A model generated the notes under the pieces. It saw only the letters and a program-made list of their open reading frames with translations. It did no database searches and was not told the DNA's origin. Both the position numbers and the translations under genes were made by a program. A stretch of DNA of 63,466 nt, counting the filler, from Octopus bimaculoides (Eukaryota): the NCBI RefSeq assembly GCF_001194135.2. It is 9 parts of 9 records of this genome, joined end to end, with 100 filler letters (N's around TTAATTAATTAA, not from the genome) between each part and the next. Parts side by side here need not be neighbours in the genome. Positions count along the whole stretch, not along the records: positions 7,689 to 27,349 come from NC_068984.1; 8 more parts are not named here. One strand, written 5' to 3'. This document shows, piece after piece, positions 7,789 through 24,867 of the stretch (the stretch's first letter is position 1; the number at the start of each line of letters is the position of its first letter).

Positions 7789-8059
7789 CCTGTACTTCGG
7801 CAGCCGACATCGCTTTTGTTCTGGATTCATCTGGAAGTGTTGGCAATCATAATTTCCACATGATGCTAACCTTCTTGAATGATATAGTCGACCAAATGGA
7901 AATTGGACCGAAGAATATTCAGGTTGGAGTTTTGCGTTTCAACAGCCGAAATTATTTGGAATTCAACCTAAACAAGCACAATACCAAGAAGAGTTTACAG
8001 AATGCTATTCAGAATATTCACTACACTCCGGGTAATACCGCAACAGGATCTGCTATCAG
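7789..8059 (+). CDS. Internal exon: N-terminal half of a von Willebrand factor A (VWA) domain
   Basis: Acceptor ttttacag|cc, donor atcag|gtgagt. Phase 1 in, phase 2 out. Translates CTSAADIAFVLDSSGSVGNHNFHMMLTFLNDIVDQMEIGPKNIQVGVLRFNSRNYLEFNLNKHNTKKSLQNAIQNIHYTPGNTATGSAI, with MIDAS DxSxS (DSSGS) and the conserved Thr in GNTATG. Confidence 0.95.
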
Positions 8060-8169
8060 GTGAGTATGTTCTCTTCTGTTTTTAATAATCTAAACTCTTC
8101 CTTTGACGAGGGAGCTGGTTTCTAACAGAGATACAAAGATCTGTCGTCGGAATGTAAATAAGGAAGACA

Positions 8170-9272
8170 ATGTCACATTTTAAACTTGAGAAAAGTCTTG
8201 CATATCTTTACTGTTATCCTTACAGATTGTATTTGTAATGTGCGAGTTTGTTGGATTTTCAGAAATCCAAGCGTATCTAAACGGTCAGCGCGGCATTTCC
8301 GCACAAAATCAAGTGCACCGATTATTATTGATATAAATGTAAATTTGTAATCTGGATGTAGAAGACAAAGGTCTCGTAGCAGTTGTCCATAATTATCCAC
8401 TTTCTCTTTGATTTTCAAAAAGATATTCACATCAGCAGAACAGCTGAACTCTATGATAGTACATAACTCCCAGACAACAACATCCGGCTTGTTATGCTTA
8501 CACTTGACAGATGATTTGGCAGGAATGTTCCACCAGTATTCTTTGTGTGGATGTTTCTGTGTGAATTCAATAACAGGGGGATTCTGTATATTTATTCCAG
8601 AACAGTCTTTTACCCGAGGGTATTGTATATTGTTTTTGCGACAACGTTATGTCGCATAGGGATGTATCATCTTGATGACATTTTTGGTGCAGCTGCTAAT
8701 CACATATGTGAAGTCTTCCACAGAAATATGATATTTTCGGTGCACCTTAGAACTCTAAGGGCTCTATTGCTTCTTCTGTTTATTAGATATTTAGTAGCAG
8801 ACTTCTGCTGTTGTATTGCAAATGCGTAGCCTCCGAAATGTGATATGATGTACAGGTCACGAGTCCAAGAGAGGCTTCACTTTATGTCAATATTTCTGTA
8901 TTCTTCAATTCTTCAGGACTACGCATGGTCTTTTTTTTTTGTTGTTTTTTTTTTGTTTTTGTTTTTGGTATACTGGTCTTTGAGGTATTTTAGTCCGACT
9001 GTTTTGAGGTTGTATATGAAGTCACATACAGAAAGTGCTTCCTGAGGAATTCGCTACCGACTTGTAGGAACGTATGATATTGTTCTCTTCACATTTCAGC
9101 ACTAAGTTAATGTATTTATCTGTGCTGCTGTTGTTTAACAAATGCTCTCTAAGAGAGACTACGCGACATTCGCAGGCTTTCTTCACGGATATCAAATCTC
9201 TACTTCCTTTATTATCTCTTCTCAGGTAGAGCCCGTTGATATCACTATTCCTGTAGAGATTTCCAGTTGATG
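8170..9272 (-). mobile_element. Decayed R4/Dong-like non-LTR retrotransposon (RT C-terminus, zinc-knuckle region, restriction-like endonuclease)
   Basis: Minus-strand peptides GNLYRNSDINGLYLRR, GYAFAIQQQ..ATKYL, RHNVVAKTIYN, EYWWNIP..KHNKPDVVVW..IIEFSCSADVNI..KEKVDNYG, ending VKICKTFLKFKM*. Confidence 0.85.
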
Positions 9273-9286
9273 TATGTATTATGTGT

Positions 9287-22519: not shown

Positions 22520-22543
22520 GAAATCGCACAATTGGTGATAGAG
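22520..22543 (+). CDS. 24-nt symmetric (phase 1-1) microexon, linker GNRTIGDR
   Basis: Acceptor ctttctctcattgcag|, donor agag|gtaagt. In frame between the ShKT and VWC-like exons. Contains an N-R-T sequon. Confidence 0.75.
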
Positions 22544-24749
22544 GTAAGTTAAACAATGAAACTGTCTAAGTTCTCTCCCTTGTCTCTTTTGAAAGTAATG
22601 TTTATTAACGCTATTGGTTACTGGCTTTCCTTCCTATCACGTTTGAATATCAATTGCTTAAATATTATTTTCGTCACATCATATAAGTTATCCTCGCCTG
22701 TGAAGATATTTTTCTGTGAAGAAATTTTCCAGTGTCATTGTTTTAGCATATGTTTGATGAGGCAGGAGAAAGAATGAAGGGATTATTATTGATAAGGAAG
22801 GGAAGAATGGTTCACATAGCTTTTTAATTTTGAATAGACCTCGAATCGAGGATAACTAATTAGATTGGAAAATCATTTCACAATCTTTAGAGTTGAACAG
22901 CTTTTTGATCTGCATAGGATATAATTGAAGAGTATGCCGTGGTCTCATATCGTCACAATCTCATAATTGATTGAGTGGGCCAGCAGACACAAAGAGGAAC
23001 AGAGTCGGTTAGGAGATTATACACCAACTTTTACGACCACCACTCAGAATCTTTTTCTCTGGTTTAGATTATCTGAACTCAATGCGTTGTGTGTGGGGGG
23101 GAGGGTATTTATGTATGGTCAATGAGAAGGATACTGTGTGCGTCGGGGAGGTATGTAGTATATTAAAATGGAACGACAAAAATGGTTAACGTAAATGGCC
23201 ATTACACAAGCGCAGGGAAAGTTTTTCGTTGGCTATGAGGTCTAGCTACACTCAATATGGTTTCAGTGAAGTAAGGCATGAAGAGACTTAATTCCATTTT
23301 ACTATAACCGTAGATTTTATTACAAACAGTTATTGTACACCTAAGTGATCGTTACAATCACTGGTGCATCCAGATGGGTCTTTCTATGGGGTTAAGTACT
23401 CATATTTTAACACGTTGAAACTCCTTTAACTTTAGATTACATAGCTTACGAGAGGTGGTCCATGCCTAAACGACCATTTCCGTCTTATTGTTATTGTTAC
23501 TACACACAGACGCACAAGTCTGCAGACAATACGTATGTGTGTGTGTGTGTGTGTGTGTGTGTGTGTGTGTGTGTGTGTGTGTGTGTGTGTGTGTGTGTGT
23601 GTGTGTGTGTGTAATATTATATTTACTATACATATATATAGATATAATTTTATATATATTCCTATATATATTTATATTTATCATATTTATATGATAGATA
23701 TTTTCATATATATTCATATATATATATTTATATGATAGATATTTTCATATATATTCATATGTATATATATATATATATGATAGATAGATAGATAGATAGA
23801 TAGATAGATAGATAAGTATGTACATGCTTGTATATATGCATATTTCTGTCAACCAAATTGAACTCACAATTAGAAATCATTATAGACGGGATAACTTGAC
23901 AAAAACCCACACAGTGGAATCGAACCATGAACCACGTAATTGCTAAATTAACCCCTTAACCACACAGACATTCCTCAGTACATGCTCAAAATATAAGATT
24001 GTCTAAATAAATAATCCAAGATATTCAGACTGTTGATTTCATTGCAAGTAGGCAAAAAATTATTTTTNNNNNNNNNNNNNNNNNNNNNNNNNNNNNNNNN
24101 NNNNNNNNNNNNNNNNNNNNNNNNNNNNNNNNNNNNNNNNNNNNNNNNNNNNNNNNNNNNNNNNNNNNNNNNNNNNNNNNNNNNNNNNNNNNNNNNNNNN
24201 NNNNNNNNNNNNNNNNNNNNNNNNNNNNNNNNNNNNNNNNNNNNNNNNNNNNNNNNNNNNNNNNNNNNNNNNNNNNNNNNNNNNNNNNNNNNNNNNNNNN
24301 NNNNNNNNGAGAGAAAGAGATATGCTCTGCATATACTTATATATGCGTTACATATTTGGATGGTGTGTATATACATGTATATATGCGTGTGTTATATATG
24401 TGTATATACCGTTATATTTGTGCGTTTGTGTGGAAAATATACATATATATATAATATATACATACATTACGGGTACATATATATAAATATGCATATATAT
24501 ACATATATACTTATATATGTATATATATAATTTATGTATGTACTCGTATATATACACATGCACCATACATGTACATATACATGAATGTCTGTATACATAT
24601 TGAAGTGTGGGGGGGGGGGTTCTGTGTGTGTGAATCTTGTATTGCATGAATAGATGAAAGACATTATACAGATTGAAACTTGAAATCTTACTCTGAATGC
24701 ATTTTCTTTTGTTTGTTTTATTCTCTGTTGCGCATTTGCTGCACTCCAG

Positions 24750-24867
24750 TGCATTTCTGCCTGTACAAAGGGAAGAGATATGCAACTGGGGAAACATGGA
24801 AGGATGGCTGCGAATACGAATGTTCATGCCTCGATGCATTGAGAGGCATATTTTCATGCTGGAGCCG
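24750..24867 (+). CDS. Internal exon: first half of a VWC-like Cys-rich repeat
   Basis: Acceptor cactccag|tg, donor agccg|gtgagt. Phase 1 in, phase 2 out. Translates VHFCLYKGKRYATGETWKDGCEYECSCLDALRGIFSCWSR (CxYxGxxYxxGxxWxDGCxxxCxC pattern). The next exon was not found. Confidence 0.88.

Follow-up and report, generated by a model that had tools for sequence, protein, structure and literature searches.

Six visible exons of one gene

The window, a 63,466-nucleotide stretch of Octopus bimaculoides DNA joined from nine parts of nine genome records, includes a part of NC_068984.1 in which six exons (E1 to E6) are strung along the plus strand (Table 1). All are bordered by AG and GT, their phases are compatible and no assembly gap falls within any of them. 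E1 and E2 encode VWA6, E3 and E5 are linker micro-exons, E4 encodes the ShKT domain that we call ShKT1, and E6 encodes only the N-terminal half of a VWC domain (VWC1), whose C-terminal half (RCPVYYDIPPQC...CCKKPIC) lies beyond 7789-24867.

Table 1. Exons, and other features discussed in the text, in the NC_068984.1 part of the window
Feature	Position	Strand	Description
E1	7789-8059	+	N-terminal half of the sixth and last VWA domain (CTSAADIAFVLDSSGS...TGSAI); MIDAS DxSxS and Thr; phase 1 -> 2
E2	11868-12154	+	C-terminal half of VWA6 (FMHYHMF...ITDG...KTTCK); MIDAS Asp; phase 2 -> 1
E3	13793-13819	+	27-nt linker micro-exon EIPIDSKPF; phase 1-1
False first exon of older gene model P0002	16348-16371	+	MSFFQQLE; in intron 3; placed by tblastn
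E4	18199-18306	+	ShKT1 (CKDKLASC...CPKYCGVC); whole domain in a single exon; phase 1-1
Intron 4 as assembled	18307-22519	+	gaps at 18692-19429, 20029-20038 and 20773-21089; the unreadable ShKT2 exon is assigned here
False first exon of RefSeq XP_014779012.1	18397-18426	+	MLDCIDMQAC; in intron 4
E5	22520-22543	+	24-nt linker micro-exon GNRTIGDR; phase 1-1
E6	24750-24867	+	N-terminal half of VWC1 (VHFCLYKG...DGCEYECSC...CWS); phase 1 -> 2

Intron 3 contains two assembly gaps and intron 5 is gapped as well; neither hides coding sequence, since RNA and orthologue are continuous across both introns. The 10-N gap within intron 4 has identical 27 bases on either side and looks, from its sequence, like an overlap that was left unmerged. 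Intron 1 carries a mariner-like remnant, with a Pfam match below threshold only, and Rfam and tRNA scans of 7789-24867 gave no match.

Two exons that existing models place in these introns do not belong to the gene. MSFFQQLE, with which the older model P0002 opens, is bypassed by RNA contigs that splice E3 straight onto E4. MLDCIDMQAC lies for the most part in a region (18307-18420) that has no RNA contig depth in eight runs.

RNA evidence for a single transcript

Our RNA evidence comes in the form of contigs assembled from eight public runs, a procedure that drops rare variants. A first-pass annotation, made from the sequence alone, had proposed the six exons and spliced them through five joins into one open frame. 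The exons are real and their borders are as it implied: contig ends from the eight runs sit on them, and contigs fall exactly on the borders of E1, E2, E3, E4 and E6. E1 is covered exactly (7789-8059), with an upstream end that reads ...VAPKEKNIT and a downstream end that is the start of E2; the sequence found before E2 is, in turn, the 3' end of E1. The E2-E3 join (12154/13793, GT..AG, 1638 nt skipped) was recovered from four of four RNA runs, with the start of E4 coming next, and the E3-E4 join is directly present on contigs. E4 is covered exactly in all eight runs. At 24 nt, E5 is below the length at which it could be mapped on its own and was recovered instead from the ends of contigs preceding E6 (four of four runs). 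Beyond E6 the contigs read (R)CPVYYDIPPQ. Four of the five joins are therefore on RNA contigs; the exception is E4-E5, where a further exon intervenes. A probe for intron sequence (12300-13700) is found in DNA runs and is absent from the RNA runs that bear the exons; of the other RNA runs, X45 alone has any of it, at 0.12 of its words.

Two contigs, of 6178 nt (X10) and 6230 nt (X5), carry E1-E6 together with 123 additional bases, and both have an upstream VWA repeat near contig position 750, seen as a weaker second match. They tie the VWA exons to 18199 and 24750 on single contigs, as the first-pass annotation had supposed. RefSeq has four separate models over this stretch, which could be taken to mean two neighbouring genes, one with the VWA exons and the other with the ShKT/VWC exons. 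There is next to no chance of this. Individual contigs of ~6.2 kb run through both parts, spanning VWA6, ShKT1, ShKT2 and VWC1, and so contradict two separate genes; the models in Octopus sinensis and Octopus vulgaris are continuous; and wherever the point at which one O. bimaculoides model gives way to the next can be placed (after VWA5 and in intron 4), it coincides with an assembly gap. It is because of these gaps that a single gene came to be divided among four RefSeq proteins.

Contig depth is 7244 in X4 and up to ~30,000 in X26; in X53 it is zero, none of the raw RNA reads from the 6% of that run that we covered falling on E4. Very high depth in some samples, and none in this portion of X53, fit a bulk secreted product of particular tissues.

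A ShKT exon missing from the assembly

Following E4, all eight RNA runs continue into ATCCGCCAAACTGTGTTGACGAAGCTCCAT, which reads (G)DPPNCVDEAPS and is absent from the window, and E5 is preceded on the contigs by ...TGCTGGTG. The distance from E4 to E6 on RNA contigs is 147 nt, made up of the 24 nt of E5 and a 123-nt exon without a counterpart in the window. This exon encodes a second ShKT domain, ShKT2 (DPPNCVDEAPSC...FCGFCGAG), in phase 1-1. The peptide spliced from the six visible exons is 271/277 identical (98%) to residues 1033-1350 of the O. sinensis protein XP_029635428.1, and the alignment has a single gap, of 41 residues, at the E4-E5 joint.

A tblastn search for ShKT2 gave no match, whether against the window or against the chromosome-level O. 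bimaculoides assembly, the record of which has the gaps described here. Neither the draft nor the chromosome-level version contains the exon, and from this we infer its genomic position: probably within either of the two large gaps in intron 4. ShKT2 is transcribed but absent from the assembly, and the in-frame join of E4 to E5 is therefore an artefact of a gap. Reading the sequence alone could not have revealed the skip because the exons concerned are all phase 1-1 and the frame is kept. The one open frame that had been claimed was thus correct in its compatible phases and in belonging to one gene, but the transcript has an additional exon. There is a caution here for anyone reading gapped assemblies: where domain exons are phase 1-1, a hidden one can vanish with the frame intact.

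Could the six-exon reading nevertheless be a real transcript, O. bimaculoides having lost the ShKT2 exon or commonly skipping it? The older model P0002 splices E4 straight onto E5, the skip is in frame between flanking exons that are all phase 1-1, and contigs are blind to rare isoforms. Even so, we consider it very improbable. ShKT2 sequence comes after E4 in 8/8 RNA runs and not one RNA contig joins E4 to E5; P0002 opens with a false intronic exon; the E4-E5 join occurs in neither RefSeq model; and the ShKT pair behind the last VWA domain is kept in Octopus, Haliotis and Lingula. A minor isoform without ShKT2 may exist all the same, contig assembly being prone to drop rare variants. The gap artefact is the reading we carry forward.

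The whole gene and its family

The piece in the window is, very probably, the middle of one gene on CM046604.1, transcribed into an mRNA of ~6.2 kb that encodes a secreted multidomain protein of ~2,040 residues, a presumed matrix scaffold. The mosaic of VWA, ShKT and VWC that the first-pass annotation described does bring all three module types together in one gene, but as ~15% of the protein (approximately residues 1033-1350) rather than as a compact three-domain protein. Its full architecture, signal peptide included, came from the molluscan orthologues in O. sinensis (XP_029635428.1) and O. vulgaris (CAI9721272.1): a signal peptide, six VWA domains (all with a complete MIDAS), two ShKT, two VWC, one ShKT, five VWC and a final two ShKT. 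The O. sinensis gene spans 163 kb and its protein is 2,043 residues long; E1 has 98% identity with its residues 1033-1121, both orthologues are 98% identical to the coding sequence visible here and keep its exon-encoded segments in an unchanged order, and the E3 peptide has the same sequence in the O. sinensis and O. vulgaris proteins. Secretion from a lophotrochozoan cell, also predicted at the outset, is borne out by the signal peptide, which is present in the O. bimaculoides 5' model too and is the sole hydrophobic stretch of the O. sinensis orthologue; no transmembrane segment was found in the latter. Pfam matches there are to VWA (six times), ShK and VWC, with none to Collagen, EGF, VWD or CTCK at E <= 0.1.

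How has such a gene been named? RefSeq's four O. bimaculoides proteins are called 'collagen alpha-1(XII) chain', 'CCN family member 3-like', 'cysteine-rich motor neuron 1 protein' (CRIM1) and an uncharacterised protein. The orthologues go by 'collagen alpha-4(VI) chain-like' (XP_029635428.1, isoform X1) and 'type VI, alpha' (CAI9721272.1). The gene is, in other words, already annotated in databases as 'collagen VI-like', and the forecast of an automated collagen name was accurate. The companion forecast, that annotation would miss the ShKT exon, was mistaken: ShKT1 is already inside RefSeq XP_014779025.1, and all five ShKT domains are present in the O. sinensis and O. vulgaris models. Literature searches by accession, locus name and protein name found no functional study of the gene, its orthologues or the family, in keeping with the expectation of no functional characterisation; the orthologues are annotated, however. 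What we offer is a correction of gene models, in which one gene with a ~6.2-kb mRNA replaces four RefSeq proteins with unrelated and misleading names. Its practical value is modest; this is an ordinary gene with nothing surprising in kind.

An exhaustive HMMER search recovered the family (a second and a third word-index protein search gave P0002 alone). A pattern scan finds the domain order An-SS-CC-S-C5-7-S1-3 (A, VWA; S, ShKT; C, VWC) in Octopus, where there are two paralogues, in Haliotis, in Lingula and in the assembled Logan contig P0054, and shorter or partial relatives occur in other gastropods and in bivalves. The family is conserved from brachiopods to cephalopods, uncharacterised and very strongly expressed in some samples, and its conservation and expression together make it a fair candidate for a major matrix protein of lophotrochozoans. 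More speculatively, and with the odds against us, the VWA array/ShKT-ShKT/VWC-VWC/ShKT/VWC array/ShKT order might define a Lophotrochozoa-wide family (cephalopods, Haliotis, a brachiopod) so far undescribed in the literature, perhaps a major secreted matrix component and the source of eggcase and shell peptides. Multi-VWC 'kielin/chordin-like' peptides are reported to be the most abundant argonaut eggcase matrix proteins, and the shell proteomes of oyster and limpet include similar ones (10.1101/2021.07.10.451900; PMC5854119). The family could be where these come from, and we regard the link to the eggcase proteins as a lead.

Three kinds of module

The VWA assignment is the most straightforward. 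Residues 6-177 of the spliced peptide match PF00092 at 167.7 bits (cut-off 23.8; E 3.8e-49) over profile positions 1-173 of 174. The MIDAS of VWA6, which had been read as intact, is complete, with DSSGS (7824-7838), GNTATG and ITDG (11938-11949) supplying DxSxS, Thr and Asp, and the motif is complete in 6/6 VWA domains of the orthologue; metal binding is a prediction. The nearest solved VWA structures are collagen VI alpha3, the top match at 86.6 bits per domain, and PTMP1, the second (E 3.9e-48).

ShKT1, for which a match to PF01549 had been anticipated, scores 22.3 bits as an exon alone (gathering score 20.9) and 16.9 bits inside the 277-residue peptide; ShKT2 scores 29.2 bits. The six cysteines of ShKT1 are in the register C-x(n)-C-x(n)-C-x(n)-C-x3-C-x2-C (CKDKLASCASFGLKICDGYQRWSRDFCPKYCGVC). 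These six are invariant among 48 family sequences, in which the only nearly invariant residues besides cysteine are one Trp and one Asp. An AlphaFold2 model of ShKT1 is compact, with three short helices and a pLDDT of 91.9; Foldseek found no match to it, the query being just 35 residues.

Anemone K+ channel blockers have the ShKT fold, and MMP23 blocks Kv1 channels through its own ShKT domain. That MMP23 domain (2k72) is the sole solved structure to match ShKT1 in sequence (E 0.25), with 6/6 cysteines aligned. One might suppose, then, that the octopus modules are ion-channel ligands, whether toxin-like or MMP23-like, and that the protein is a venom, saliva or channel-modulating product. We consider this highly unlikely. 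All five ShKT domains sit inside a matrix-type protein of 2,043 residues, with no sign of peptide release, and the same architecture is found in Haliotis and Lingula, which are non-venomous. Nor is the pore-blocking Lys conserved: at the dyad positions, as set by the cysteine register, ShKT1 has Arg-Trp and ShKT2 has Ala-Trp where ShK has Lys-Tyr. An ShK-type peptide toxin, moreover, is ~35-40 residues long, and a domain internal to a large protein and lacking the Lys-Tyr dyad is not one. A toxin role for what the first-pass annotation had called a toxin-fold module gains nothing in support. We read the ShKT modules as structural or binding units, by analogy with domains in other proteins.

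The VWC-like module holds up in its fold and its cysteine pattern but falls short of the Pfam gathering score. Against PF00093 (gathering score 27.6), the half domain in the window reaches 19.4 bits and the complete domain 22.1 over the whole model; a Lingula relative reaches 31.8. Within the whole protein, VWC and ShKT scores are at or under their gathering scores. The ten-cysteine pattern (C..W..C-xx-C-x-C ... CC-xx-C) is present in the octopus domain, and C56, W69, C73, C77, C79, C89, C93, C112 and C113 are invariant in 30 sequences. An AlphaFold2 model of VWC1 (pLDDT 87.9) superimposes on the vWC domain of CCN3 (5nb8_A; TM 0.75, rmsd 2.6, 33% identity), and Foldseek also returned that of collagen IIA.

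With seven such domains, the protein could act chiefly to regulate BMP/TGF-beta signalling outside the cell, in the manner of kielin/chordin-like protein, crossveinless-2 or CRIM1, its VWA array serving as a matrix anchor. The confirmed fold and cysteine pattern are in favour, as are relatives named kielin/chordin-like, CRIM1 and CCN3-like; those names are automated, however, and BMP binding is putative. The orthologue is without a CHRD, VWD or IGFBP domain and without a transmembrane segment, and very high transcript depth is more in keeping with a structural product made in bulk than with a regulator of morphogens. We think such a role unlikely and favour a matrix scaffold.

Proposed function

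Our functional reading is based solely on what these domains do in other proteins. By that analogy, the protein would be a secreted, multivalent scaffold of the extracellular matrix. Its VWA array would use metal-ion sites to bind partners in the matrix, as in the N-terminal arrays of collagen VI and in PTMP1, and the disulfide-rich VWC/ShKT tail would be an extended stalk through which protein-protein contacts are made. The tail may also bind BMP-type ligands or other copies of the protein itself.

Comparison with known systems

Several well-known proteins share parts of this architecture. The MMP23 ShKT domain (2k72) and the anemone ShK toxins have the six-cysteine register and the Pfam ShK match in common with the octopus domains, which differ in being repeated internal modules of a giant matrix protein and in lacking the Lys-Tyr dyad. 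CCN3 (5nb8), collagen IIA (5nir, 1u5m), kielin/chordin-like protein, CRIM1 and NELL share the VWC fold and the ten-cysteine pattern with its CxxCxC and CCxxC; the octopus protein lacks their defining partner domains, and its VWC scores in Pfam are sub-gathering. It is not kielin/chordin-like protein, CRIM1 or a CCN protein, having no Pfam match to CHRD, VWD, IGFBP, TSP1 or CTCK and no hydrophobic segment other than the signal peptide. Nor is it a matrilin or cartilage matrix protein: the orthologue has no EGF or matrilin coiled-coil match, and its C-terminus is a ShKT domain.

Von Willebrand factor is likewise secreted and rich in cysteine, and its array of A domains is also followed by one of VWC domains. 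The octopus protein, unlike von Willebrand factor, has neither D assemblies (VWD/C8/TIL) nor a CTCK dimerisation knot, and multimerisation of that type is therefore not expected. VWD-C8-TIL and the C-terminal cystine knot being absent from the orthologue's Pfam matches, we reject a homologue of von Willebrand factor or of gel-forming mucins.

The N-terminal array of collagen VI alpha3 (PDB 9han, 6snk, 4igi) offers another likeness, with tandem VWA domains bracketed by cysteines in a secreted matrix protein. The octopus protein differs in lacking a Gly-X-Y triple helix, FN3 and Kunitz domains, and in having the ShKT/VWC tail in their place. With no Gly-X-Y run of at least 5 in the 2,043-residue orthologue, and no Collagen match, it is not a true collagen (VI or XII), and the name 'collagen' is a misnomer. 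PTMP1, the proximal thread matrix protein 1 of mussel byssus (PDB 4cn8), binds collagen. It consists of two VWA domains only, without the ShKT and VWC domains of the octopus protein, and is, like it, molluscan, secreted and built of VWA domains.

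Six exons of a transcribed gene

The six exons that the first-pass annotation had joined into a mosaic of VWA, ShKT and VWC-like domains (7789-24867) belong to a real gene and had been correctly read. All six have AG/GT borders when their flanks are read, RNA contigs agree with them, splicing them together yields an open frame of 277 aa, and the nine peptide motifs quoted at the time are all present on the + strand. The two Pfam matches anticipated then were also obtained, VWA on the 277-aa frame (E 3.8e-49) and ShK on exon E4 alone (22.3 bits against a gathering score of 20.9); VWC on E6 gave a sub-threshold match. 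Chance can account for none of these findings, and the VWA identity is beyond doubt.

Exons of the gene in the window, with the phase on entering and leaving each
Exon	Position	Strand	Phase	Encodes
E1	7789-8059	+	1 to 2	VWA6, N-terminal half
E2	11868-12154	+	2 to 1	VWA6, C-terminal half
E3	13793-13819	+	1 to 1	27-nt linker
E4	18199-18306	+	1 to 1	ShKT1
E5	22520-22543	+	1 to 1	24-nt linker
E6	24750-24867	+	1 to 2	VWC1, first half

Sampled words of E1, E4 and E6 were 100% present in the same RNA runs. A probe from intron 2 reached a high share in DNA runs only; it was absent from every RNA run containing the exons, and one other RNA run, X45, contained 0.12 of its words. We placed assembled RNA contigs on short, microsatellite-free stretches. 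Contig coverage of E1 matched its borders exactly, with RNA encoding ...NVAPKEKNIT just before it and the start of E2 after it. The E2–E3 joint is a GT..AG skip of 1638 nt (four of four RNA runs), E3 leads into the start of E4, and E6 has E5 directly before it and, after it, sequence reading (R)CPVYYDIPPQ, where the RNA encodes the second half of VWC1. Contigs of 6230 nt (run X5) and 6178 nt (run X10) contain all six exons along with an upstream VWA repeat near contig position 750 (a weaker second match), and so are close to the full mRNA.

RNA runs X10-X13, labeled as one organism (B), and X18-X20, labeled as another (C), also contain every sampled word of the exons (100%), and contigs of X10, X12 and X18 show zero differences from the window. 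Organisms B and C must be very close relatives, if they are not the same species labeled differently.

An exon probably lost in an assembly gap

The one error in the transcript as built was the join of E4 to E5, which skips an exon. After E4, eight of eight RNA runs carry ATCCGCCAAACTGTGTTGACGAAGCTCCAT, reading (G)DPPNCVDEAPS, rather than E5, and on the contigs E5 is preceded by ...TGCTGGTG, reading ...GAG. E6 begins 147 nt beyond the last base of E4 on these contigs: the 24 nt of E5 and 123 nt absent from the window, an exon that starts ATCCGCCAAACTGTG and ends TGCTGGTG. The 123 nt correspond to the 41 residues DPPNCVDEAPSCAKLGTENCVEYPAWSRENCARFCGFCGAG of the Octopus sinensis and Octopus vulgaris orthologues. 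These residues, the sole gap in an alignment to the O. sinensis orthologue that is otherwise identical at 271 of 277 positions, form a second ShKT domain (ShKT2; 29.2 bits in Pfam). tblastn for ShKT2 found no match on either strand, in the window or in L001, the chromosome-level record around this part of the window. The exon is in the RNA and without a match in the assembly; it is therefore transcribed and unassembled.

The part of the window that carries the gene (7689-27349) is AT-rich animal DNA with many microsatellites and seven runs of N. It matches O. bimaculoides CM046604.1 at 107.84-107.87 Mb (assembly GCA_001194135.2), which has identical gaps plus larger ones flanking this part on both sides; in L001 coordinates the bounding gaps are 6878-9829 (upstream) and 29491-30455 (downstream). 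Intron 4 has three gaps. Two are large, 738 N (18692-19429) and 317 N (20773-21089), and both abut or adjoin simple repeats; the third, of 10 N (20029-20038), has the identical 27 bases TATGATTTGTAGGCGCGTGTGTGTGTG on each flank and looks like an unmerged contig overlap, not missing sequence. The missing exon is probably hidden by an assembly gap, the likely site being one of the two large ones in intron 4. Nothing coding is concealed by the gaps of introns 3 and 5, since RNA and orthologue are continuous across both. More exons of the gene may be unassembled, as the orthologue stretches before E1 and after E6 had no match in L001 at the cut-offs used.

Microsatellites abut several gaps: (GT)n ends at the gap that starts at 18692 and another (GT)n follows 15119 (15120-15150), (GATA)n follows 21089 (21090-21150), and CA/TA repeats surround a 10-N gap at 26662 (26640-26690). 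A (CA)n run also lies at the left edge of this part of the window (7689-7770). Simple repeats thus seem to be the cause of at least these breaks.

Other intronic repeats were seen in passing. Intron 1 has two direct copies, 84% alike, of a 147-nt interspersed repeat (family D7; 9518-9664 and 10311-10457), and ORF-like sequence related to it appears in the ORF list. On the - strand at about 10460-11300, short ORFs resemble a decayed mariner-type transposase, for which the sole Pfam support is one sub-threshold Transposase_1 match (E 0.033); the end of an unrelated O. sinensis 'matrilin-2' model (P0008) looks like a similar putative transposase tail. Intron 3 contains an imperfect repeat of about 420 nt (14138-14561), spaced at 9 to 12 nt, from which long pseudo-ORFs of poly-Asn, poly-Ile and poly-Tyr arise on both strands.

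The full-length protein and its annotation

An exhaustive HMMER search with P0002, an older gene model that also joins E4 straight to E5, found 534 relatives, the nearest being O. vulgaris CAI9721272.1 (2037 aa) and O. sinensis XP_029635428.1 (2043 aa), the orthologue, named 'collagen alpha-4(VI) chain-like' in the database. A pattern scan and Pfam give the layout: signal peptide, six VWA, two ShKT, two VWC, one ShKT, five VWC and two ShKT domains. The mosaic proposed at first covers a small portion of this large protein. In the orthologue there are 114 cysteines, 17 N-glycosylation sequons and a complete MIDAS motif in all six VWA domains; a scan of it found the signal peptide as the only hydrophobic segment, zero Gly-X-Y runs and zero RGD. 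A tandem Octopus paralogue shares this domain order, as do Haliotis XP_071091672.1 and an assembled Logan contig (P0054), and brachiopod Lingula XP_013410815.1 adds N-terminal C-lectin and TSP1 domains to it; bivalves and other gastropods have shorter or partial relatives. The complete architecture is already public for the sister species, and the gene is uncharacterised and ordinary in kind.

RefSeq splits the O. bimaculoides gene into four proteins. XP_014779039.1 holds VWA1-5, and XP_014779025.1 runs from E1 to E4, then reads through into intron 4; it contains E4, so annotation, contrary to what had been expected, did not miss the ShKT exon. The older XP_014779012.1 began with a spurious start exon in intron 4 before E5, E6 and onward; its successor, XP_052823621.1 ('CCN family member 3-like'), holds only the more distal ShKT3-VWC part, and XP_052823622.1 ('cysteine-rich motor neuron 1 protein') the C-terminus. 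The two model breaks that can be placed, after VWA5 and in intron 4, coincide with assembly gaps. The O. bimaculoides tandem paralogue XP_052823619.1 (P0197) lacks 19 residues of its own ShKT2 relative to the O. vulgaris model, a difference that may reflect a further defect of annotation or assembly in the corresponding exon.

A probable matrix scaffold

With a signal peptide, no membrane anchor, a long array of adhesive VWA domains and a tail of twelve small disulfide-knotted modules, the protein is probably a multivalent matrix scaffold that is secreted. Through the metal-ion sites of its complete MIDAS motifs, the VWA array would bind matrix partners, either fibrillar or polysaccharide. The tail would extend the protein's reach and add contacts with other proteins, and this VWC/ShKT stalk might capture BMP-type ligands or self-associate. 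Contig depth is very high in some RNA samples, at 7244 in X4 and as much as about 30,000 in X26, and the sampled part of another run had none; this pattern is consistent with bulk production in particular secretory tissues. Abundant multi-VWC 'kielin/chordin-like' proteins are reported in shell and eggcase proteomes (10.1101/2021.07.10.451900; PMC5854119), and their link to the octopus protein is a lead only.

Comparison with known families

Automated names for the relatives include 'uncharacterized', 'kielin/chordin-like', 'CRIM1-like' and 'mucin-19', and the kind of name guessed at the outset proved right. Collagen VI or XII and matrilin, VWF and mucins, and chordin or KCP, CRIM1 and CCN were each rejected, their defining features being absent from the orthologue; the database names reflect resemblance only. 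The closest solved relatives of the VWA domain are the N-terminal domains of collagen VI alpha3 and the mussel byssal protein PTMP1. The VWC domain falls under the Pfam cut-off yet has the full ten-Cys pattern, and its fold, modeled confidently (pLDDT 87.9), overlays that of the vWC domain of CCN3 (TM 0.75). ShKT1 has the cysteine register, passes the Pfam cut-off and aligns Cys for Cys with the ShKT domain of MMP23; a fold search with its model, too short a query, gave zero matches. The channel-blocking dyad of ShK toxin is Lys-Tyr. By cysteine register, ShKT1 has Arg-Trp at these positions, and the Trp is nearly invariant among the 48 ShKT domains of the family compared, which suggests that it has a conserved role, in structure or in binding, particular to this family.
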